A DNA stretch of 64,000 bases from Octopus sinensis. Taxonomy: Eukaryota. How positions within the stretch are numbered: the stretch's first letter is position 1; every line of letters begins with the position of its first letter. This document shows positions 2,430 to 62,790 of this stretch, piece after piece. Under the pieces are notes generated by a model. The model ran no database searches. It was not told the origin of the DNA and saw only the letters and a program-made list of their open reading frames with translations. Made by a program: the position numbers and the translations under genes. Where the stretch lies: positions 13,764,001 through 13,828,000 of the forward strand of contig NC_043021.1 of NCBI RefSeq assembly GCF_006345805.1, read 5' to 3'.

Positions 2430-2580
2430 TGTTCTTTCCACTTTTCCCTCTCAACTCTTTCTGTCAAAGAGCGTACACTGGAAATGTCAAAGACTTTTCC
2501 ATTCTTCCTGAACGTCTAACTAATACACCTGCTTGTTGTTCCTTCACTTGTCTTTGCTTTTTGTTTTCTGTAAATTTTAA
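2430..2580 (+). mobile_element. Short Penelope-like repeat with decayed hammerhead motif (family copy 3)
   Basis: tcttt-CTGTCAA-A-GAGC-gtac-ACTG-GAAA-TGTC-aaagacttttcc. The downstream flank is homologous to the reverse complement of 18540-18620 and 20280-20360. Confidence 0.5.
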
Positions 2581-9290: not shown

Positions 9291-10244
9291 CTTTAATCAT
9301 ATTGCATACCTGTTCAACATGTGATGTTTATTGATGGGTAAATCTGAGCACCCATGCATATATGCATGTGTGCATATATGCAAATGCATACATGTACACA
9401 TATGAACATCATCATCATCATCAACCCATGGACATTATTGTTTCAAGTCCTAGAACTCTAGTGTTGGTTACCTGGTTTTCATGGTGTATAAATGGTTGAG
9501 ATCACAGTACTCTCAGACAAAGCTTTGGTCGCCCTGAAGCTATAGTAGAAGACACTTCCCCAAGGTACCCATGCAGTGAGACAGAACCTGGTACTATATG
9601 GTTTGGAAGCAAGCTTCTTACCACACAGTCATGCCTGTGGCTATCTAAGTAAGATTTTAAAGACCCCCTCACCATAATAATTTTATGTAGAACCAATATG
9701 TTGTACAACTGAATAAGGTCCATAACCCTGCCTGCTTTGGTTTACCACCGCTGTATGATATTATGACCTTTGGGTGTCTTTAACAGAATCCATTCTGTTA
9801 CAAACAAGTCTTTGGTGTTCTTTTTTTTTTCCATCTCTTTTCTCCTACCAAACTGAGAAACCTCTCTTCCCCACTCCATTCCCCTGCAAAAAGGTTCATC
9901 GGTGCTGCGATTTCTCTTCCTGACCAAGCCATAAAAATAAAAAAAATAAGTAAAATAAAGTGAGAGAGAATGAGAAAGAGAGAGACAGAGAGAGAGAGAG
10001 AGTCAGTTCAGTTTGCTTTGGTGATCCATGGGAAATTCTAAGAAAAACAAATCACAGCCTGTATATAAACAACAAAAAATAGCAGCAATAACCACCACCA
10101 CCACCACAGTAACAACAATAACAACAGCAACAAAAAGAACGGTAAATGTTTAAGCAACAAAATACAATAACAACAGCAACAGTTCAGACATCTGTTGCAG
10201 AGATCGATATGTGCAATACAATTGAAACCAGCTAAATAAAGAGA

Positions 10245-10660
10245 GAGAGAGGTGGTGATGGTGATGTTGATGTTTGTGATGGTGATGTTTGTGGTGGTGG
10301 TGGTGGTGATGATGTTTGTGGGGGTGGTGGTGATGGTGATGTTTGTAGTGGTGGCAGTGGTATTTGTGGTGGTGGTGGTGGTGGTGATGGTGATGTTTGT
10401 GGTGGTGGCAGTGGTGTTATGCGGTGGTGATGGTGATGTTTGTGGTGTTTGTAGTGGTGGCAGTGGTGTTTGTGGTGGTGGTGATGATGATGTTTGTGGT
10501 GGTGGTGGTGGTGTTTGTGGTGGTGATGGTGATGGTGGTGTTTGTGGTGGTGGTGATGGTGATGTTTGTGGTGGTGGTGGTGATAGTGGTAATGTTTGTG
10601 GTGGTGGTGATGGTGATGTTTGTGGTGGCAGTGGTGGTGGTGGTGTTTGTGGTGTTAGTT
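10245..10660. repeat. (GGT)n-based minisatellite with a gatgtttgt anchor
   Basis: ggtggtgatggtgatgtttgt repeated. Confidence 0.85.
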
Positions 10661-11086
10661 GGGGAATGTTTGAGTGAAATACGTAAACTCTAGCTAGCTA
10701 CATAACATGCATACATATAAATGCACTTGCCCACATACACACACAGTGCTAACATATACTACCACCAGCACCTCCCCCACCACCACCATGGCTGGCGTCA
10801 TCGTTGTCGTCATCATCATCATCATTGCCACCATCACCAAAAACAACCACTATGTTGCTGCTGCTGATGCTATTATCATTATTGTTGTTGTTGTCATCAT
10901 CGTCACCACCACCACCACCACCACTGTTGCACCACTGCTCTCGTCATCATCGTTGTCATTGTCATCACCACTACCATCATCATTAGAACACATAAATATA
11001 CACCTACACACTAACTACTTGCACATGCAAGCACACACACACACACACATACACACACATTTTATCATCATCATGATCATCATCGT

Positions 11087-11400: not shown

Positions 11401-12539
11401 ATAAAATGATCATCATCACTCACATCACTACAACTGAGAGGGAGTTTTTATCTGGTCATTTGATCTGCTAGAATTTGCAGTGAAATCTCTCTCAAACCAC
11501 ATCATCATAACTTTCCCTATCCACTTTTCCATGTTTGCATGGGCCGCAGCAGATTTCCTATGGCTGGATGTCCTTCCCGTCACCAACCTTTACCTCTTCC
11601 AAGACATCTTGTAGAATATTCAAAAGGGATAACACTGCTTGTATGACAGTGATGATCACTTTACAGCTATCTTTTGGTTTGAAGGCAAGGCAATGCAAAC
11701 ATACACATATACATTACATGTGCATTGCTTTCTCTATTTTTTTCTCTCCTGTCTACTTTTTCAGAAGAAGAGTGTGTGCTTGAAACATAAAAGACTTTTC
11801 CTTTTGTTTCTTTCTACTTCCTGAGCATAAACCTAATATACTTTGTGGTTTTTTTTACCTTGTTTCATGTTTACACTGCATATATATACATATATATACA
11901 TACATACATACATACATACATACATACATACATACATGCATGCATGCATGCATGCATGCATGCATGCATGAGTTCAGCAAAAATTTAGATTTAGATGAAT
12001 ATGGTACAAAGTTGAGGCACCAGAATTTAGTACGGTATTATCCATTCAATTTCAAAATAAGGTGATTAGAATCAAAATAAGCAACAATATATATATATAT
12101 ATATTTTATACATACACACATATGTATACACACACACACTTATCTATTTATATACATACGCACATACATGTATGCGTATATATACGCATATATATATCTG
12201 TGTGTGTGTCTTTGTGTCCCTGTTTATCACCCCTCACCACTGTTTGGCAATTGGTGTTAGTTTGTTTACATCCCCATATTATAGTTCACTGGATGACTGT
12301 TGCCACAAGTACAAGTAGTTTGTGTGTCTAGAAAATGTGTAAGGAGCCTTTTGCCTTTCTCACCCACTTTATTATTGTGAACAAAGGTTTTCAGCAATGT
12401 TCAGTTACCAAAAATAAATTTTGTACAAGACTGTCAATGGAGAATGATATGCAGGTGTGCCTTTCAGGAATTGTGCCTAGAACTGAGTTATCATATTTGA
12501 TGGCATGTATGGTGCACTTTTTTTTCCCCAAACGAATAG

Positions 12540-14928: not shown

Positions 14929-16689
14929 ACACCAGTTGTTGCTAGTACTACAGCCATGGTACTTCTATCAGCAGCACCATCACTATACTACAACACCAAC
15001 AATTACCACTACCATTGCTATTATCAATACATACCAGTGTCACTTTCATGACCACCACAATCTAAATAGCCACAAATAGCATGGCTGCTAACCACCACCA
15101 CCACCACCACCACCACCACCACCACCGCTACCATTATCACTGCCATCATCACCATCATAATTGCCACCACCACCACCACCATCATCATCACCATCAATAA
15201 TATGGAATGGCTATAAAAAAACCCATTCTATATTGGTTTGTTACCACATTTTTCTCTCTCGCTTTCTCTGTTTTGTAATTTCTATCTCTCTCTCCCCTTT
15301 GCACTCTCCATTTCTCTCTCATTCTCTATTTCTTTTTTTTTTTACACACACATACACACTTCTTTCTCTCTCTCTCTCTCTCTGCCTTTCCATATCTCTC
15401 TTTCCATTTCACTGTCTCCATATCTCTCTCTCTTGCTATCTCTTTGCATCTCTCCCTCATACATCACTGTCTCTCATATCTCTCTCTCCTACATCTCTCT
15501 CTCTTATTCATCTCTCTCTTTGTCATACATCACTCTCTCTCGTATCTCTCTCTCATACATCTCTCTTTCTCATACATCTCTCTCTTCTCTGTTCCTTCCC
15601 CATCTCTCTCTATTCTTATCTCTCTCTCTCATTCAACATTTTCATCTTTCACAATTTTTTTAATGCCAAAATCTTATTTTATATTTCTTTGTTGTTGTTG
15701 TTAAAAGACTATTTGATGTTACTGTGTTAGTTTACAGCTATCTTTAAACACTCACTGCATCTACATACACATACACACATTCACATACAAGCACACATGG
15801 ACATACAAACATACACATATATACATACACACACACACACACACATTTACAAACATACTCATATACATACAAACCTACACACATACATAGATATTTGCAC
15901 ATATATACAGGGCCACATAAAAACAAGCAAGCATACATACATATATATACACACACATATGCACATATACACATGCATGCATGTATGTATGTGTGTGTGT
16001 GTATATATATATATATGTATGTATATATATATATATTTATATATATATATTATTTTCGTAAACCTTCCCATTATATATATATATATATATATATATGCAT
16101 GTATATATATATAGATATACACACACACATACATACACACATGCGAATGATCACCCTAATTTTCATTTCATGCAGGCGTATTTATGCATAGACACAGATG
16201 CATGTGCAAATTTATCTACACACGCCCATTTAATAATTTTCTTATCCAATACACACACATACACACCCATGTGCACAAGCATGTGCGCACATGCATCCAT
16301 CAACACACACTTGTCTACCAACATACAAATGCTCACACCTATGTTAAAAAAAAATTTCCCTCCCACTGCATTATACATACACACATACATACACACACAG
16401 TATGAAGACTAATTCTCTATAATTTTCTAAAATCTTCATATTTCATTCCTTTAATTTCTTGACTAATTCAAAGTATCTTCACTGCTATTACTATCACCAT
16501 CATCACGAACACTGCTACCCCCTCCACCACTACCACCATCATCAACATCATCAGCCTCTGCCTATAATATTATTTCTGCTATGGTCCGGTCAACATGTAA
16601 CATTTTAAATATGGAACGCAATTGAAGGCGTATATATATATTGAAGATATATATATATATATATATGTATATGTATGCATGTATAGATT

Positions 16690-17000
16690 AGTTATTGGAT
16701 TTATTAGAATCTAGGTACATCAACATGTGGGATGCCAAAACTGGCAAGGTACAATAACATAGGGGTGACTGTGAGGTAAAACAACCATGAAGGTATCATA
16801 TGTTGCTAGGATACTGTAAATATTTAAGTATCAAATCCTTATCTGAAGCTGGTTAGCATCATCAAGGTATTATCTCACCTGTTTGTACCAGTTTAAAATT
16901 TTACCTGAAGATGGTGGATTGTATGCTATGATGTAATCTATGAATACATCAATAAAATCCTATCGAAACAGCTGTTGTAAATTTTAATCCCCATTATGTT
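16690..17000 (+). mobile_element. Probable Penelope-like element terminal-repeat remnant carrying the hammerhead motif
   Basis: Unique-looking block set between (TA)n tracts that ends in a PLE-style minimal hammerhead. No ORF recognised. Confidence 0.4.
16893..16987 (+). ncRNA. Minimal type-I hammerhead ribozyme motif (Penelope-like-element type)
   Basis: Stem I TTAAAATTTTAC/GTAAATTTTAA, core CTGAAGA-T (16905-16912), long stem II GGTGGATT/AATCCTATC, GAAA (16965-16968), palindromic stem III AACAGCTGTT. Predicted GUU cleavage after 16976. Confidence 0.7.
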
Positions 17001-17070
17001 CTTTATGTGTGTATGTATGTAATTATGTATGCATGTACACACATGTATATATATATATATTATACATATA

Positions 17071-17108
<38 letters not shown>

Positions 17109-17689
17109 ACATCATCATCACCGTTTAACGTCCGTTCTCCATGCTAGCATGGGTTGGACGGTTCGACCAGGGATCTGGGAAGCCAGAAGGCTGCACCAGG
17201 CTCCAGTCCGATCTGGGAGTGTTTCTACAGCTGGATGCCCTTCCTAACACCAACCACTCCGTGAGTGTTTCGGGTGCTTTTTACGTGCCAGACGTGTCTG
17301 GCAGTGGCCATGATCGGATTGGTGCTTTTTACGTGCCACCGGCACAGAAGCCAGTCGAGGCGGCGCTGGCATCGGCCACGTTCAGATGGTGCTTTTTACG
17401 TGCCACACATATATATATATTAGATTAGAGGTTCTTCTCAAGCCATAGGCTCATAAGGCCAATTTCCTGGATTCTGTGGTCTATATATTTCCCCTAGATG
17501 GGACTCCAGTCTGTTGTAGGATTTACTCATTTTTGCCAGCTGAGTAAACTGGAAGCAACATCAAATGAAGTGTTTTGCTCAAGAACACAATGCAGTGCTC
17601 AGTCCAGGAATTGAAACCACAGTCATATGATCACGAGTGTAACACCCTAATCACTAAGCCATGTGCCTCAACACATGCACACATACATA

Positions 17690-18490: not shown

Positions 18491-18523
<33 letters not shown>

Positions 18524-18539
18524 ATGATGATGATGATAA

Positions 18540-18670
18540 TAGTTCAAATTTATAGAAAAACAAAAGATGAAGACAAGTGTAGGAACAACAAGTAAGTTTA
18601 ACGCTTGGGAAGATGGAAAAGTCTTTTACGTTTTGAGCCTATGATCTTTGACAGAAAGGAAGAAAGGAAT
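18540..18670 (-). mobile_element. Short Penelope-like repeat with decayed hammerhead motif (family copy 2)
   Basis: Homologous to 20280-20420. Minus strand reads CTGTCAA-A-GATC-atag-GCTC-AAAA-CGTA-aaagac. Confidence 0.5.
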
Positions 18671-18685
18671 ATATATATATATATG

Positions 18686-19395: not shown

Positions 19396-20206
19396 GTATA
19401 TATAATTTCAATACTATGCAAATAATTCACGAAAAAATAACTTGCGAACATATCATTGACTCTGTCATTATCTAGTGTAACAATTAAAAATGATAACAGA
19501 ATCAATAATATAGGCTATTGCGGGCCCCCAGAAGGCATTAAATAGCTGAAAGATTAAAATTAATCAAAGGACATATTGCTGGAAATAACAGTAAAAACTC
19601 TTATTTAGATTGCCAAAATACATTGATAATAACTACAAAAACCAACCATCCAAAGGCAAAACCGGCTATGACAATCTCTCAGCATACATTCAAGTATTTG
19701 GACTCACATGGACCGGTTTCTACACTGGCATAATAGCCTCAACTTCCTCAACATGCGTTACCATGATTATATATATATGTGTGTGTGTGTGTGTGTTGTA
19801 TATATATATATATATATTATATATATATATATCTGTATATATAATTTCAATACTATGCAAATAATTCACGAAAAAATAACTTGCGAACATATCATTGACT
19901 CTGTCATTATCTAGTGTAACAATTAAAAATGATAACAGAATCAATAATATAGGCTATTGCGGGCCCCCAGAAGGCATTAAATAGCTGAAAGATTAAAATT
20001 AATCAAAGGACATATTGCTGGAAATAACAGTAAAAACTCTTATTTAGATTGCCAAAATACATTGATAATAACTACAAAAACCAACCATCCAAAGGCAAAA
20101 CCGGCTATGACAATCTCTCAGCATACATTCAAGTATTTGGACTCACATGGACCGGTTTCTACACTGGCATAATAGCCTCAACTTCCTCAACATGCGTTAC
20201 CATGAT

Positions 20207-20270
<64 letters not shown>
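19375..20270. repeat. Tandem duplication, period 439 bp
   Basis: Identical ORFs start at 19610 and 20049; the units differ only in microsatellite length. Confidence 0.9.
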
Positions 20271-20279: not shown

Positions 20280-20420
20280 TTCATAAAGAAACAAAAGACG
20301 AAGACAGGTGGTGTAGATAACAAACAGATGTATTAGTATAATGCTTGGGAAGTGAAAAAGTCTTTAACTTTTCGAGCCAACGCTCTTCCTCAGAAAGAAA
20401 CAAGGAGAGAAAATAAAGAA
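20280..20420 (-). mobile_element. Short Penelope-like repeat with hammerhead motif (family copy 1)
   Basis: Minus strand reads tcttt-CTGAGGA-A-GAGC-gttg-GCTC-GAAA-aGTT-aaaga. Homologous to 2430-2580 and 18540-18670 and adjacent to (TA)n. Confidence 0.6.
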
Positions 20421-26520: not shown

Positions 26521-27639
26521 GTGTCGTTCGCGAGAAGAGACTCAATAGATCGCAGTGTGGTAGCTGCTCTGCTAAGCACGTCACTCCGAACATACCATTT
26601 GAGAACTGGGGTCGATGTAGTCAACTTATCTCCTCCTCTGAAATTGCTGGCCTTGTGCTAAAATTTCAAATCTCTATTACTACCATCACTTCAGCATTTC
26701 ATCTGTCTTTACGCTCTGAGTTCAAATTCCACTGAGGTCGACTTTGCCTTTCATCCTTTTGAGGTTGATAAAATAAAGTACCAGTCAAATACAGGGGGCT
26801 GATGTAATCGACTTATCCCCTCTTCTCCAGGGGTGCTGCCCTTGTGCCAATATTTGAAATCAATATTACTACTATCACCACCTTCATCACCACCGACAGC
26901 AGCTTTACAACAACTACTACCACTGCGGACACTGCAACCATGACAACAATTACCACCATCATCACCACTACAACTGACAACAGTATCACCACTACCATCA
27001 CCACCACCACAACCAGTACCACCACCACTACTAGCATCTCTAATATCATCACCACCACTCCCTGACCCCTAATGTCACTACTGTTGTACCTTTACATCAC
27101 CATTACTAATGTCCCTACTATGTCCATCATCATTGTTACTACTATCACCACTACAACCTGTATCATCACTCACATCACCATTGCTACCACCACCACCACA
27201 ACAAGAACAACAACCACTGCCATGACCACAGTTACACTACCAACATACCACTACTGTTACTGCTATCTCACTATCACCACCACCGCCACTATAATTGCTG
27301 CTACCAATGCCATCACCACCACTGCCACTACTGACCCCACAACCACTATTATTGCTGTCTCAGTATCACCACCACCACCATAAATTCTAACTTGCCACCA
27401 CCACCACCACCACCATAAATTCTAACTTGCCACCACCACCACCACCACCATAAATTCTATCATGCCACTGCCACCACCAATACCATCACTGTCACCACCA
27501 CCTCCACAAATTCTATCAAGTTGCCATCGCTCCACCACCATCTACCACCACCACCTCCACTACCACCACCACCATCACTCACCACCACCACTACCATAAA
27601 TTCTATCATGCTGCCAATGGCATCACCACCACAAATTCT

Positions 27640-28200
27640 ATTATGCTGCCACCACCACCATCTCCACCGCCACCACCATCTCCACCACCACCACCATCTC
27701 CACCGCCACCACCATCTCCACCGCCACCACCATCTCCACTGTCACCACCATCTCCACTGCCACCACCATCTCCACAGCCGCTACCATCTCCACCACCACC
27801 ATCCCCACTGCCACCACCATCTCCACCGCCACTACCATCTCCACTGCCACCACCATCTCCACCACCGCTACCATCTCCACCACCACCATCTCCGCTGTCA
27901 CCACCATCTCCACTGCCACCACCATCTCCACCGCCGCTACCATCTCCACCACCACCATCCCCACTGCCACCACCATCTCCACTGCCACTACCATCTCCTC
28001 CACCACTACCATCTCCACTGCCACCACCATCTCCACCACCGCTACCATCTCCACTGCCACCACCATCTCCACCGCCACCACCATCTCCACCACCGCTACC
28101 ATCTCCACTGCCACCACCATCTCCACCGCCACCACCATCTCGACCACCGCTACCATCTCCACTGCCACCACCATCTCCACTGCCACCACCATCACCACTG
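27640..28200. repeat. 15/18-bp minisatellite (ccaccaccatctccactg)n
   Basis: Direct inspection; open in three frames (PPPPSP, HHHLHC, VEMVVA). Confidence 0.9.
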
Positions 28201-28959
28201 TGTACTGAGTCAGATAAATTGATTGTTATATAAAGTAACTGTTGATTGACCTACTGATGCTGTATACACACACACACAGGATGTGTGTATGGAGAGAATT
28301 AGATGTGTAGCGCATTGCGCGCGCCGCGTATATATATATATATATATATCGTACTGTAGTGTGCTGTGTGTGTATTATATGTGTCTGTGTAGTGTGTGTG
28401 TGTGCGTATTGGAGGAGTCAGCGATATCAATCGATTGTAATATATAGCTTTAAACTGTTGATTCACTAACTGAAGGTGTGTACACGGAAGTCAGGTGGGT
28501 GTATGTATGAGTGTGTATTTGTATATTGAGCATGTGTGCATGTGCATATGTGCATATGCGTTTGCGTTGTATGCACTGAATTAGCTTTTCTCCCTTCCTC
28601 CCTCTCTCTCTCTCTCTATATATAAATATATACATACATACATGCACATGTGTTTGGATGTATACATTGAACTCTTGTGTTATATATTCCTAACTCGCTT
28701 TGCATGCTATGCTATTTGTCGACCATTCTTCCTGTCTGTACAGTTTCACCTAGTTTCACTCTGAACATTAAGCCATAGCACCAACTACCTGTTGGAGTGG
28801 TGTGCACTCTCAGTGATTAGGTATCTTACCTAGCTAAATAAAATAGGTTTGTGTAGCATCAGGAACATCAAGAAGGGCATCTGGCTGGAAAAACAGACTG
28901 AAAATGAAGTGTAATAATAATGATGATAATAATAATGATGATAATAATAATGATGATAA

Positions 28960-29445
28960 TTGGTATAAAAGATGGGCTACAGCAAATATTCTGCTCAATA
29001 CCACAGATTTGCTTGTCAGTTGTTTGACCGCAACCAGTTGAGCATGTCCCTTAGTGGCTGACGATATGTGCATCTCTGATCACAAACAGAAGTAGTGGGG
29101 GAACATCATAGCCATGTGTTGAAAGGAATTCTTTGGGGTTTGGATAATTCACCTCTGGAAACATGGGTGTTTCCTTCAACATCCTTAAACAACCCTTATT
29201 CAGGGACCTTTTGAGCGAGATGGGTTACTCAACCAGAAGAAAATTCTAACTGGGCCCCACCTGCAAGGTCATGTGCTGTTTATCTTGATATGAGATCACC
29301 ATGTCGCGCACATATGGTTGTGATGCATGTGCATAGTGTACCCTTATTAGACGGGTAATCATGATGGGTATACTGGGCTTCATATATTTTACCCCAGTGT
29401 CACTTTGATGGTAGCTGCCAGGACACTGCATCCTTCAAAAATACC
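28960..29445 (+). mobile_element. About 480-bp interspersed repeat of unassigned class ending in a CR1-tail-like segment
   Basis: High identity over its whole length to the reverse complement of 62217-62700. Confidence 0.8.
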
Positions 29446-39477: not shown

Positions 39478-39670
39478 TCATCATCATCATCATCGTTTAA
39501 CATCCGTTTTCCATGCTAGCATGGGTTGGACGGTTCAGCCGGGGTCTGGGAAGCCAAGAGGCTGCACCAGGCCCCAGTCTTATCTGGCAGTGTTTCTACA
39601 GCTAGATGCCCTTCCTAACGCCAACCACTCTGTGAGTGTAGTTGGTGCTTTTTACGTGCCACCGGCACAG
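39475..39670 (-). mobile_element. Family C element, inverted. Other copies at about 17105-17405(-), 37620-37950(+), 48090-48375(+), 49500-49700(-), 50300-50475(+), 61885-62030(-)
   Basis: catcatcgtttaacatccgttttccatgctagcatgggttggacgg...gatgcccttcctaacgccaaccactc. Confidence 0.8.
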
Positions 39671-40176
39671 GTGATGGTTGTAATATGTTTTTGATAACAT
39701 AATAGAGGTGAGATAGAATGATGTCTATATTACAAATATTACAATAACCAGTAACATGTTGTGCATGTAGAGTAATATTACGATCATGAAATTAGCATTA
39801 GCTTATCTCACACTTTCTCAGGAAACCCCTAGGAAACTTTTGTGGAACCCCGGTTGAGAAACGCTGCTCTAAAGAATGGACTAAACAGGACAGGTGGAGA
39901 CACATGGGATGGAGAGTCACTGAAGAGGTCACAGATTGTGTGAGAAAAGATGTCAAAGGACACAAAAATAAGAACAATAACAAAGCTAAAGTGAAGAATT
40001 ACTATATAGTACATGTGTTTATTTGACACAAAAAAAAAGGCAATCCTGAAATATAACAAAAACTGCTTTTCATTGGCCAATTTATTTTAATTTTGTAGAA
40101 TTGTTAGATTTTTCTTGGTCTAACCTTCTCTTATTGTCATTTTCCTTCATCTGTCTTCATTTCTTTATCATTACAG

Positions 40177-40276
40177 GTTGAAGAGATTCGGCGAATGATC
40201 GACAAAATATCTGACAATGTGGAGGCAGTTAAGAAAAAACATAGTGATATACTATCAGCCCCACAGACTGATGACC
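40177..40276 (+). CDS. STX1: Internal coding exon of syntaxin-1 (Habc domain, helix Ha to Ha-Hb linker); equivalent to STX1A exon 3
   Basis: Polypyrimidine tract plus TTACAG acceptor ends at 40176 and a GTAAGT donor starts at 40277. The 100-nt exon (phase 0 to phase 1) translates [33 protein letters not shown], matching the syntaxin-1 family motif VEEIRxxIDKIxxNVExVKxKHSxILxxPxxD. Confidence 0.95.
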
Positions 40277-41499: not shown

Positions 41500-41975
41500 T
41501 GACAGTACCGTCTGATTGGCACTCGTGCCAGTGGCACGTTAAAAGTACATCCGAGCGTGGTTGTTGCCCGGGCCACAGATTGGCTCCTGTGCCAGTGACA
41601 CATGAAAAGCACCATTCAAGCATGGTCGTTGCCAGTGTCGCCTTACCGGCACATGTACCGGTGGCATGTGGAAAACAACATTTGAGCATGGTCGTTGCCA
41701 GTGCCACCGGACTGGCTCCCGTGCAGGTAGCACGTAAAAACACCTTTTGAGCGTGGTCGTTGCCAGAACTGCCTGACTGGCCCTCGTGCTGGTGGCATGT
41801 AAAAAGCACCCACTACATTCTTGGAGTGGTTGGCATTAGGAAGGGCATCCAGCTGTAGAAACCGTGCCAGATCAGATTGAGCCTGGTGCAGCCTCTGATT
41901 CACCAGTCCTCAGTCAAACTGTCCAACTCATGCTAGCATGGAAATAGACGTTAAATGATGATGATGATGATGATC
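41500..41975 (+). mobile_element. SINE-like family C with about 60-bp internal repeats and a (GAT)n tail
   Basis: Five gtggcacgtaaaaagcacc-type subrepeats, then gagtggttggcattaggaagggcatccagctgtagaaac and gacgttaaatgatgatgat. Confidence 0.8.
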
Positions 41976-48090: not shown

Positions 48091-49769
48091 CGTGCCATCA
48101 GCACCGCCTCGACTGGCTTCCGTGCCGGTGGCACATAAAATACACCAATCTGACCGTGGCCGTTGCCAGCCCCGCCTGGCACCTGTGCAGGTGGCACGTA
48201 AAAAGCACCCACTACACTCACGGAGTGGTTGGCGTTAGGAAGGGCATCCAGCCTGTAGAACATTGCCAAATTAGACTGGAGCCTGTTGCAGCCTTCTGGC
48301 TTCCCAGAACCCCCGTCGAACCGTCCAACCCATGCTAGCATGGAGAACGGACGTTAAACGACGATGATGATGATGATATATATATATATATATATATAAT
48401 ATATATATATATATAATATATATATATATATATGTCTGCGTGTGTCTCTAAACTTCTTTGTCTATATATATATATATATCTTTTTATTTGTTTCAGTCAT
48501 TTGAACTGTGCCCAAGCTTGAAAGGTTTAGTCAAATAAGCTAATTCCAGTCCTTGTACTGCTTTAAAGTTTGGTTCTTATTCTGTCAGTCTCTTTTGTTG
48601 AACTGCTAGGTTACGGGTATATAAACAAACACTGGTCGTCAAATGGTGGTGGTGGTGGGGTCAAACATACATGCATAGACACACGCATACCATCATCATA
48701 CGTCTACTTTCCATACTGGCATGGACAGTTTGATAGGGAACCTGTGAGGTGCAGGGTTGCATCGAGACCCTTTGTTATCTTTGGCATGGTTCCTACAGCT
48801 AGATGCTCTTCACAATGCCAACCACTTTACAGAGTGTATTGAGTGCTTCTGCTTTTTTTTTTGTGCTACCAGCACTAGTGAGGATTCTATGTATTTTGCA
48901 AGACAAGATGGGCTTCCACACAGTTTCTATCTATCAAATTCACTCACAATGGGAGTGAACTGAGAACCATGTGGTTGGGAAGCAAACATCTTACCACAGA
49001 ACCATGCCTGTGTCCTTCTCTTTCTCTCTCTCTCTCTCTCTTTCTCTCCATGTGTGTGTGTGTATGTTTGTATACACACACACACACACACATGTGTATA
49101 GAGTAAGTGGGCAGGATATAAAGAAACCATAAACAAAATACAATGAAATCTAAAGGAAAGAAAGATTTTATTTATTTTATTTATATTTATTTATTCTTGG
49201 TTGTATTTTCACTGAAAGCATTTGTAAAGTTTTATAGTTTGTTTGTAGAAATCTGTGTGTGTGTGTGTGTGTGTAGGTTATAGGTGGCATGTGTTGTCTA
49301 CCAACAGATAATCGATTAAAACTACTGATATGAACAGTAATGGCATATTTATTGTCCATTGATGCTGTTGTTGCTGTTGTCGGGAACTTATGACAAATCA
49401 CTGGCAGAATTTAGAAAAGGCAGCGAACTAGTTGAATCGTTAACACAACAGAGAAAATGCTGAGTAGCATTTCTCATGGCTTTATGTTCATCATCATCAT
49501 CATCATCACCGTCTTCGTCATCATTTAACGTCCATTTTCCATGCTGGCATGTGTTGGCAGATTTGACCAGAGCTGGCGAGCTGCACCAAGCTCCAGTTTG
49601 ATTTGGCATGGTTTCTATGGCTGGATGCCCTTCCTAATACCAACCACTTTATGGAGGATGCTGGGTGCTTTTTACATGGCACCGACACAGGACTCTTGCC
49701 GGCCAAACCTCTTCGCCAGGCGGAGTGGCCATAACACTTCTGCTGTGGAGTACAGCAAGGCACCAGGTA

Positions 49770-54956: not shown

Positions 54957-56390
54957 CAGTTTACAATTGAATAAACAAGGACTATACAAAGAATTCAATA
55001 TTAGTTATGCAATTATCAGCTAGAGTGCAGTCCCTGTACATTAGACTCTGTGTGTGTGTGTGTGTGAGTGAGTGAGTGTATGTGTATGTGTGTGAAGATG
55101 AAGTTGTATTCAAGTATAAAATGGGTAAAGTCAAATATAGCCATACGCACACATTACACATACACCCTCGCATCTATTGACTCACACACAAACGCACTCA
55201 CACACACACATGATTGCATATGTGAAGACATATACACTTGGACATTATGACATTCGTATTGTCTCAGCTGCTGGCATACACACACACGCACACTCACACA
55301 CAATGCCCATCCACCAACAAACACATACATATTCTCTCACACACACATACACACATATATATATATATACCTGTATCCATATACATGGCTTTGTGTCTAT
55401 TTTATGTGTGTGTGTGTGTTTGTATGTGTACACACATACATATAATATATGCGTGTATGTATATGTGTGTGTGTGTGTGTGTGTTAAAATTTTAATACAC
55501 TGGACTATATATAGCCCTGTGTATTATGTGCATACATTGTTCACCCACACACGGTGTCTTGTACGCTTAAAATTTACAGTGCACCCTCCACCCCACTTTC
55601 TGCACCCCCACATACACACACAAATGAATGCAAGTGCACTTGCACTTATATACACACACACATACACACTCACTTATACTCTCTCCTCACATTGTTTCTT
55701 CTGTCTTTCTACCTCTCTTTTCATACTCTTACTTTCACCCTCTCTCTCTCTCCCTATTCTCTGTGTGTGTCTCTCTCTTCTATTCCTCTCTCTCTTTCCA
55801 CATGCTCTCTTTCTCTTCCTCCCACTTTCACTCCCTTTATCTCTTCATACTCCTACTCTTCCCCTCCCTCCCATCATCTCCTCTTCTTCCTCCCCCTCTC
55901 TTCATTCTTTGCATTTCACATTGTCTTTCTCTTCACTCCTCTCCCTCTCTTTCATACTCATGCTCCTCCTCTCTCCTCTTACACCTATTCCTCTCATTCT
56001 CCTCATCCTCTCGCTAATAAATTAACCCAGTATGGGTGACCTCCAGAGATGTTACCCAGAGTTGTTATACAAGCTTGTAACCTAAGTAATGGATAAGCCA
56101 AGGATTTTAATTTAATTAGAGGTAAAAATCGTGTATCATTCCGTTTCTCAGGACCTTACCTCCTAAGTAATCCAGTGTATGACCCCCAAATATTCCATCG
56201 CTAAGCCCTTAAAAACTCTCCTGACCCCTCAGGAGTACCTCTCTACTATCCCCCAGCCAACTTGTATTAATAAACTAAAGAGAGAGCCTGTACATGGTTG
56301 GTTGATTTGCTAGAAACAGTGACAAAATATGCCTGTAAGTTCAACCCTTGCCTCCTATCATCTATGGAAAGGATACATTATGTAATGTGT

Positions 56391-60440: not shown

Positions 60441-62216
60441 AACCTTCATCTTTTACTTTCCAAAGGAGGTTTTTAACCTGTTATTATTTGTAACTTTATC
60501 TGCTTCAAGACCCACCGTTCTGAAAAAGCAAAAAAAGAATAAATGGTTCCTCCACTCTTTTCTGTTTTCCATTTCAATTTAAAAAAAGAATTGCTTTTTT
60601 TAATTTTCTAAATTAATTTGGTTGAGAAATCAATTATTTCTTTGTTTCTATTTGTTTTTGTTTAGGTTTCTTTGTGTTCTTGTATTTATTTAATTGTTTG
60701 TTTGTGTTTTTCCTGGTTTTTGACATTTTCCAAAGAATATTGGAAATCAAAGTAGACATAGGTCAGTGTTAAAACTAGTAAGAGGATGATAGTGGTGTGG
60801 GTAGTGGTGATGGTGGCGGTAGCAGTGGTGGTGGTGGTGGTGGTGGTAACAGAGAAAGTTACTAATGGTTGGTGGTAGTGATGGTGGTAATGGTGTTGGT
60901 CGTTGGTGATAATTAATGGCAGAGTAGTGTTCTTGTTTCTTGTAAGGTTGACCTTTTGCTTAAACCAAATGTTTTGGAGTGAACCAGAAGCCGGTGAGAA
61001 GGGAACCGGTTGTGCACAGTCACTAGCAAAGTGAAAACCCACTTGTGTAATGCATTAATCTATCTTCATTTCTCTCCCTCCCTCTCACTCTCTATCTACA
61101 TATCTATCTATCTATATATATTCATATTCTTAACTCTCTATCTCAATATATATATATATCTTCCAATCTCTGTCTGTCTCCTCTTTCTCTTCTTTTTTCT
61201 CTCTCTTTCTCACTCACACTTGTATATAAATTTACTCACTGTTTTGTTATTAGAAAACCACTTAGAATCACACTAGAAGCTGGAAATAAACCTCTCCTCC
61301 TACCATCCCCCATAAAAAATATCTTTGGCATTCTGGTAGATGACGATGTACTGAATGATGTATGCAAAAAAAAAAAAAAAATTATATATAAAAAGACAAC
61401 ACAAAAAAAGAATCTTAATAAATTGAAATTTGCCTTTTAGTGGGAGAAAGAAGACAGAAACTTATTGGTAACTTTATGAGTGTGGCTGTGTGGTTAAGAC
61501 ATTTGTTCACTTTAAAGCCTTGCAGTTTCAGGTTCGATCCCACACTAGTGCAGCACTTGGGACACATAAGCGTCATCTGCTAAAGCTCTGAATTTGTTAG
61601 ATGGAAGCTGTACAGAAGCTTGCTCTTTGCATGTGCATACACACACACACACACAAAGAACAAATAGCGAGGGATTATCAATCTGGGGAAAATACTTAAT
61701 AAACTCTCTGTTGGCACACCGGGCTTAACAATATTGTTTAGATTAGTGAAGAACTCCAAGTAATCTTTTGGTAGAGTTCCAAGTTATGGTTCATCACAAT
61801 TCTGTATTGTAAATCTGTGGATGGGCTCCACATACACTGGTTTTTATGGGGTTATATGTAAGAAAGAAGTTAAAAATAATGGTCATCATCATCATCATCA
61901 TCATTGTTTAACGTCCGTTTTCCATGCTGGTATGGGTTGGACAGTTTGACTGAAGTTTGGAAAGCCAGCGGCTTCACCAAGCTCCAGTCTGATCTGTTTC
62001 TACTTCTGGATGACCTTCCCATGGCCAATTTCTCTATTAGAGCAAATTTGGCTTACAGCTGTTTCCAGTAGTCATTATAGGTACATTACTGATAGGTTTA
62101 CTCCTCATATCAAGATAAACAGCGCTTGACCTTGCAGGTGGGGCCCAGTTAAAATTTTCTTTAGGTTGAGTGGCCCCTGCTGAAAAAGTCCCCGAATAAG
62201 GTTTGTTTAAGGAATT

Positions 62217-62790
62217 TTTGAAGGATGCAGTGTCCTGACAGCTACCATCAAAGTGACACTGGGGTAAAATATATGAAGCCCAGTATACCCATCATGACTA
62301 CCCGTCTGATAAGGGTACACTAGGCACATGCATCACAACCATATGTGCGTAACATGGTGATCTCATATCAAGATAAACAGCACATGACCTTGCAGGTGGG
62401 GCCCAGTTAGAATTTTCTTCTGGTTGAGTAACCCATCTCGCTCAAAAGGTCACTGAATAAGGGTCGTTTAAGGATGTTGAACAAAACACCCATGTTTCCA
62501 GAGGTGAATTATTCAAACACCAAAGAATTCCTTTCAGCGCATGGCTATGATGCTGTCCCACTAATCCTGCTCGTGATCAGAGATGCATATATCATCAGCC
62601 ACTAAGGGACATGCTCAACTGGTTAAGGTCAAGCAACTGACAAGCAAAAATCTGTAGTATTGAGAAGAATATTTGCTGTTAGCCCCATCTTTTATACCAA
62701 GACAAAACATGTACATGATAACACTTCCAATCAGTTAAGATCAAAAGTCATGAGAGTCAGTGCCTGCTACTGCTTCAGGAATAGGTACCG
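62217..62790 (-). mobile_element. Second, inverted copy of the 28960-29445 repeat
   Basis: Reverse-complement match, including the junction aaggatgcagtgtcctgacagctaccatcaaagtgacactgggg. Confidence 0.8.

Follow-up and report, generated by a model that had tools for sequence, protein, structure and literature searches.

We identified a complete and apparently intact hammerhead motif at 16893-16987 on the + strand of the window, which is the whole 64,000-nucleotide stretch of Octopus sinensis DNA analysed here (its first letter is position 1). The motif has the sequence features of the hammerheads carried by Penelope-like elements (PLEs), is not accounted for by chance, stands alone in the window and shares its strand with the one syntaxin-1-like coding exon found there. 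Our reading, in which we place reasonably good confidence, is that this is a solitary PLE-type hammerhead, most likely the remains of a PLE pseudo-LTR truncated at its 5' end or of a retrozyme derived from PLEs, that it inserted into a TA/TG microsatellite and that it has little or no effect on the host gene; we infer both the transposon origin and the low activity. It is likely to be a cephalopod PLE-type hammerhead with an unusually expanded helix II, recognisable from the sequence alone and missed by the Rfam covariance models. Should it turn out that the motif is conserved or is active in neurons, it would offer an invertebrate counterpart to the rare intronic ribozymes that are conserved in vertebrates.

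Anatomy and class of the hammerhead motif

Reading base by base within 16600-17300, we found all 15 of the core positions and all three helices. The parts of the motif are as follows.

16893-16904 (+): 5' strand of helix I, UUAAAAUUUUAC, with U16899 bulged and C16904 at position 2.1
16905-16911 (+): catalytic core C3-U4-G5-A6-A7-G8-A9 (CUGAAGA)
16912 (+): unpaired U between A9 and G10.1, a hallmark of PLE hammerheads
16913-16964 (+): helix II with its insert, closed by G10.1-C11.1 (G16913-C16964)
16965-16968 (+): core G12-A13-A14 together with A15.1 (GAAA)
16968-16975 (+): helix III palindrome ACAGCUGU, 2 bp in the monomer and an intermolecular helix in the predicted homodimer
16976 (+): U17 in hammerhead numbering, the last residue of the triplet GUU (G16974-U16975-U16976), with the predicted scissile bond at 16976/16977
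16977-16987 (+): 3' strand of helix I, GUAAAUUUUAA, which pairs in the predicted fold

The conserved hammerhead core (C3 U4 G5 A6 N7 G8 A9, G12 A13 A14, A15.1-U16.1 and H17) is found in full, and helices I, II and III are joined at it. Helix I, formed by 16893-16904 with 16977-16987, comprises 11 bp (5 of them contiguous) with a single bulge. Helix II pairs GGUGGAUU in the RNA (GGTGGATT as DNA; 16913-16920) with AAUCC(U)AUC (16956-16964) over 8 bp with U16961 bulged, and it encloses a 35-nt insert containing a 7-bp hairpin (TGATGTA at 16929-16935 against TACATCA at 16945-16951). Helix III of the monomer consists of A15.1-U16.1 and C15.2-G16.2 only, closed by an AGCU loop. There are no disrupted pairs and no core changes, and all 28 modelled base pairs are intact. 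Every hammerhead element listed in the first-pass annotation lies where that annotation placed it, including the cut site at 16976/16977. Its description of stem III as a perfect palindrome stands in part: the 10-nt palindrome AACAGCTGTT at 16967-16976 is real, yet the A and the U at its two ends belong to the core (A14 and U17), which leaves ACAGCUGU as helix III proper.

A9, the unpaired U and G10.1 together spell AUG (16911-16913), and the frame that opens there (16911-16931) reads MVDCML and then a stop. Since this frame is shut after six codons, no element protein is encoded. The AUG does hint at why PLE hammerheads conserve an unpaired nucleotide at this point, as the extra nucleotide may be part of the start codon of the element. 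In the Poseidon PLE of Anolis, the reading frame opens where stem II starts, and reverse transcription begins 111-118 nt into that frame (PMC11167929).

The PLE hammerheads are set apart by a helix II that is longer than usual (6-8 bp), a nucleotide left unpaired between 9 and 10.1, a highly conserved G10.1-C11.1 pair, a palindromic stretch of 15.2-16.2 plus loop 3, and a helix I that is short and poorly defined; in a Drosophila virilis variant, helix II is bulged at mid-length and helix III is small and palindromic (PMC4209133). In the octopus motif we found the unpaired nucleotide (U16912), the closing pair with a helix II of suitable length (G16913-C16964; 8 bp) and a palindrome, ACAGCUGU, that would build a dimeric helix III in the predicted cofold. 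The resemblance to the minimal dimeric hammerheads of PLEs (PMC4209133; Lunse et al. 2017, as cited in PMC6765202) therefore covers the CUGANGA core with one unpaired nucleotide, G10.1-C11.1, an 8-bp helix II bulged in its middle (a trait also of the Drosophila virilis variant), a helix III that is small, palindromic and able to pair copies, an open helix I with no defined loop 1, and the AUG at A9-U-G10.1, as at the reading-frame start of Anolis Poseidon. In contrast to those hammerheads, the motif has no flanking RT/GIY-YIG frame, second pseudo-LTR or tandem partner in the window, its helix I has 11 bp rather than 4-5, helix II carries the 35-nt insert with its 7-bp hairpin, and position 17 is U. 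The first-pass annotation, which had described an intact-looking, type-I, Penelope-like and dimer-prone hammerhead, is supported by the presence of all the PLE sequence hallmarks, while the hallmarks of PLE context are absent from the window.

We also asked how often such a motif would be expected in sequence of this kind. The window contains 30 CTGANGA heptamers, and one alone is accompanied by helix II, GAAA, helix III, a residue other than G at position 17 and helix I. A first descriptor was tuned on the candidate, its thresholds being the candidate's own contiguous stem lengths; in dinucleotide shuffles it gave 0.003-0.007 matches per 64-kb window, and 0.04-0.1 with looser thresholds. A second descriptor was drawn a priori from the description of PLE hammerheads by Cervera & de la Pena 2014 (PMC4209133). 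Its requirements are a helix I with 4 or more bp, a single unpaired nucleotide after A9, the pair G10.1-C11.1, a helix II with 6 or more bp and no more than one bulge, GAA leading into a Watson-Crick palindrome that starts with A and ends with U, and H17. This literature-derived descriptor matched once in the real window, at the candidate, and in none of 1229 random 64-kb sequences (first-order Markov). When the expectation was factorised, as a product of probabilities simulated separately, it came to 4e-6 per window for the literature-derived descriptor and 5e-10 for a motif of the candidate's quality, and it stays below one match genome-wide (~3 Gb, or ~45,000 such windows). The hammerhead motif is present by descent, and chance can be excluded as its source.

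The search with Rfam hammerhead models that had been proposed at first pass gave no family that scores the site, so that in formal terms the motif does not fall within the Rfam hammerhead families. Neither Hammerhead_1, Hammerhead_II, Hammerhead_3, HH9 nor HH10 matched anywhere in the window at gathering thresholds, and none matched at E<=10 in spans of 451 nt and 111 nt around the site. The likely causes of this failure are that helix II carries a 35-nt insert and that helix III is minimal.

Genomic setting of the motif

Two features of the window define the setting of the motif.

16690-17000 (+): non-repetitive island of ~300 bp whose 3' end holds the motif; candidate fragment of a 5'-truncated PLE or of a retrozyme
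40177-40276 (+): syntaxin-1-like coding exon, the only one in the window, found by tblastn and flanked by ..acag upstream and gtaagt downstream

The island is bounded on both sides by (TA)n/(TATG)n/TG microsatellites, and it ends ~90 nt past the AUG of the hammerhead. PLEs are biased to insertion in microsatellites and are often 5'-truncated, with the hammerhead located in the pseudo-LTR (PMC8557442). Penelope families are reported from Octopus vulgaris, where their expansion has been dated to ~56 million years ago (PMC13282606).

No significant similarity to the island was found elsewhere in the window (self-BLAST of 16700-17000; short matches only). Likewise, neither the descriptor scans nor a covariance model built from the candidate revealed a second hammerhead in the 64 kb; with filters off, the model scored the candidate itself at 122.7 bits and everything else at 23 bits or less, these matches being microsatellite palindrome. 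The first-pass annotation had compared stem II with that of "other copies here", and in these scans no such copies exist in the window as hammerheads. None of the 20 largest non-simple ORFs of the window carries an RT or GIY-YIG Pfam domain, and no RT-like stop-free stretch was seen by eye at 9-25 kb. The context expected of a PLE, namely a pseudo-LTR beside an RT and GIY-YIG frame, with tandem or partial-tandem copies, is thus absent from the 64-kb window, as it would likewise be for a heavily 5'-truncated PLE copy. The arrangement of non-LTR retrozymes, with head-to-tail repeats of ~170-400 bp that each bear a type-I hammerhead, was not found in or around the island either. When metagenomes were scanned with a 20-mer that spans helix III and helix I, four microbial sequences matched by chance, and none of them has a core upstream. 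Exact-protein look-ups with ORFs of the window gave no record.

Two further candidates for repeat structure connected with the island were rejected. The 12-mer TGTAAATTTTAA, which the island shares with 2569-2580 (+) and 55567-55578 (-), was considered as a transposon 3' tail, and its BLAST E-value of 2.3 is not significant. A degenerate tandem repeat inside the island (CTGAAGCTGGT at 16843 against CTGAAGATGGT at 16905) was dismissed for its inconsistent offsets and E-values of 4.5 or more.

A SINE-like family was also examined as a hammerhead and rejected. It is represented by four diverged copies:

2456-2566 (+): SINE-like copy
11737-11937 (+): SINE-like copy
18493-18685 (-): SINE-like copy
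20280-20420 (-): SINE-like copy

The core CTGAGGA-A-GAGCgttgGCTC-GAAA is kept in one of the four copies and helix I in none. The best copy (~20393, -) reads CTGAGGA-A-GAGC gttg GCTC-GAAA followed by a 4-bp hairpin; here too an extra nucleotide follows A9, and the closing pair is G-C. This core is the only other hammerhead-like one in the window and is mutated in the other copies of the family.

The exon at 40177-40276 codes for about residues 37-70 of syntaxin, a part of the Habc domain, and its database relatives agree with this assignment. A homology search with the exon peptide returned Habc fragments of squid-like and other animals, an identical protein not being among them. The motif lies 23 kb upstream of this exon, and both are on the + strand, which upholds the earlier view that the ribozyme is in the sense orientation relative to a syntaxin-1-like gene. 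A search of the 40 kb upstream gave no coding exon for the N-terminal residues that come before, so the upstream exon should lie beyond the start of the window and the motif would be intronic. It is therefore probable that the motif is located in a long intron upstream of the syntaxin-1-like exon.

For comparison, the octopus exon begins with VEEIRR and the preceding intron falls after ..FFEQ, and in a squid-like ENA contig (L005, 10001-10219) a single uninterrupted exon extends from AQSDDDD via FFEQVDEIRE to QTDD. The position of this syntaxin intron differs between these two lineages or paralogues. There is no hammerhead-like motif within 10 kb on either side of the syntaxin exon in the squid-like contig, whose intron is not orthologous to the one considered here.

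Predicted activity and competing explanations

Based on nearest-neighbour thermodynamics, the catalytic fold of the monomer is predicted to make up ~0.03% of the ensemble and to lie 3 kcal/mol above the minimum-free-energy fold. The latter retains helix II and its inner hairpin, and in the competing monomer fold C3-U4-G5 would be paired with a portion of the palindrome. For the fold as a whole, the z-score is -1.86. In the predicted homodimer, a 10-bp intermolecular duplex of AACAGCUGUU is part of the minimum-free-energy structure, with a gain of 11.7 kcal/mol by cofolding, and helix III would be extended to 8-10 bp. In the folding check suggested at first pass, the monomer is thus predicted to favour another fold over the catalytic one, and the homodimer to build the palindromic intermolecular helix.

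C17 is the commonest residue at position 17 among natural hammerheads. Cleavage of the octopus motif would be expected to be slow or absent, because it has U17, no partner within 64 kb and no evident contact between helix I and helix II, and because it is solitary with a monomer helix III of 2 bp. Cleavage of single PLE hammerheads was undetectable in vitro and that of dimers was weak, and a dimer mechanism has been proposed for PLE, newt and some viroid hammerheads (PMC4209133; PMC6765202). Monomeric hammerheads with a 2-bp helix III and a tetraloop have been reported to cleave at rates from 22% per hour to 0.1 per minute (PMC7229834). Within an intron, a slow hammerhead left splicing unimpaired in vivo (Dye et al. 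2006; Fong et al. 2009; both summarised in PMC2995048). The earlier suggestion that the ribozyme could cut the pre-mRNA of a core synaptic gene to any meaningful extent therefore finds little backing, given the ~0.03% share of the monomer fold, the missing cis partner within 64 kb, the single PLE hammerheads without detectable cleavage (PMC4209133; PMC6765202) and the slow intronic hammerhead that spared splicing (summarised in PMC2995048).

In the parent element, hammerheads would have been present in tandem copies, and the palindromic helix III could have paired two copies to form one extended helix III. Each core would then cut 3' of position 17 to leave a 2',3'-cyclic phosphate and a 5'-OH, and such cleavage would process the multimeric transcript of the element. 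The solo copy described here would be expected to show slow cleavage or none, and to play no part in the host gene. This explanation is favoured by the microsatellite-bounded island, the AUG as in Anolis Poseidon and the 2-bp helix III with a tetraloop (PMC8557442, PMC11167929, PMC7229834). It has against it the lack of an RT/GIY-YIG frame and of a second copy in the window, the lack of an Rfam match, the failure to retrieve a homologue from any collection searched and the atypical 35-nt insert.

An unlikely alternative, though one that deserves some weight, is that the island is not a fragment of an autonomous PLE and is instead a lone non-LTR retrozyme monomer, retrozymes being small circular-RNA retroelements with a type-I hammerhead. 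The island is ~300 bp long and falls inside the 170-400 nt size range of retrozymes, and a 2-bp helix III with a tetraloop is typical of the hammerheads of invertebrate retrozymes (PMC7229834). Monomers that stand alone form a recognised category, and it is reported that retrozymes derive from the pseudo-LTRs of PLEs (bioRxiv 10.64898/2026.07.22.740005). The motif also shares with the type-I hammerheads of metazoan retrozymes (Cervera & de la Pena 2020, PMC7229834) the type-I topology, the AT-rich composition, the capping of helix III by a palindromic tetraloop and a unit of a few hundred bp. However, it differs from them in having no tandem array, no tandem repeat having been found in or around the island, and no conserved loop 1-loop 2 contacts. 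Its helix II is twice as long as theirs, canonical retrozyme hammerheads having a 4-bp helix II and loop-loop contacts, and both this length and the unpaired nucleotide after A9 are traits of the minimal PLE hammerheads (PMC4209133). Moreover, if retrozymes are PLE derivatives, this alternative differs from a PLE remnant in degree only. Far less credit can be given to chance resemblance or to a MITE-like hairpin element with 11-bp terminal inverted repeats that, in AT-rich DNA, imitate helix I; we regard this as having hardly any likelihood. The surroundings are indeed AT-rich and rich in palindromes, no Rfam family matches and the fold z-score is a mere -1.86, but the expectation is only 4e-6 per window, with 0 of 1229 random windows matched. 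In addition, inverted repeats alone do not explain the exact coincidence of the core nucleotides with the three helix junctions, and the absence of a second copy is contrary to a MITE family.

The intactness of the motif would be unexpected in a relic that is old and decays neutrally; it could be accounted for by an insertion that is recent or by selective constraint. Because this intactness is unexplained, we retain a small probability for an exapted host ribozyme, that is, a selected intronic hammerhead that would cleave the nascent syntaxin-1 pre-mRNA and tune its processing or output in the manner of amniote HH9/HH10 or the CPEB3 ribozyme; we consider this improbable. Sense-strand intronic hammerheads are common by-products of PLE and retrozyme activity. 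In keeping with exaptation, the motif is sense-oriented to the exon, its core and 28 of 28 modelled pairs are intact, which would be noteworthy if octopus PLEs were at their most active tens of millions of years ago (PMC13282606), and some hammerheads with a 2-bp helix III and a tetraloop do cleave as monomers (PMC7229834). Against it stand the strongly disfavoured monomer fold that is predicted, the absence of a partner copy from the window, U17 in place of C17, and loops 1 and 2 without a recognisable contact. The microsatellite flanks resemble the landing site of a transposon, and the squid-like contig has no such motif within 10 kb either side of its syntaxin exon, in a non-orthologous intron. 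Slow cleavage by an intronic hammerhead spared splicing in vivo, according to the summary in PMC2995048, and the retrozymes of Xenopus are depleted from introns (bioRxiv 10.64898/2026.07.22.740005). Amniote HH9 and HH10 (De la Pena & Garcia-Robles 2010, as described in PMC7229834) resemble the motif in being sense-strand hammerheads of protein-coding genes, apparently intronic in the octopus case. Unlike it, HH9 and HH10 are, in that description, ultraconserved, canonical and efficient monomers with tertiary contacts, whereas the candidate has a weak, dimer-prone architecture and is not matched by their Rfam models. A more elaborate proposal, of a domesticated and selected ribozyme in the cephalopod syntaxin-1 intron whose enlarged helix II is a regulatory platform for protein binding or RNA editing, so that dimer- or factor-dependent cleavage modulates output, is more doubtful still.

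Other repeats and features of the window

Matches to the Rfam families mir-297, mir-466 (these two strong-looking) and mir-568 at 17001-17096 (56 bits or less, below gathering) were rejected as artefacts of TG/TA microsatellite composition and are not miRNA genes. ARAGORN called no tRNA in the window. An abundant, interspersed SINE-like repeat of ~180 bp (..GGTTGGACGGTTCGAC..CTACAGCTGGATGCCCTTCCTAA..) was found at 17110-17290 (+) and 48192-48372 (-), with related sequence near 39541-39673 and 41800-41913; the first of these copies begins ~120 bp downstream of the hammerhead.

Long imperfect arrays of 9-bp and 12-bp units, CCA- or GGT-rich, occupy 27520-28230, 10200-10700 and 250-1160, and give rise to spurious ORFs of 150-230 aa on both strands. 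BLAST also revealed a direct duplication between 19542-19832 and 19981-20270, ~98% identical with a period of ~439 bp and with identical stop-free translations of 63 aa. It looks like a recent local tandem duplication beside a SINE-like copy. Finally, 29008-29445 and 62211-62648, which lie 33 kb apart, are 438-bp inverted repeats with 94% complementarity and presumably represent two copies of one transposable element in opposite orientations.
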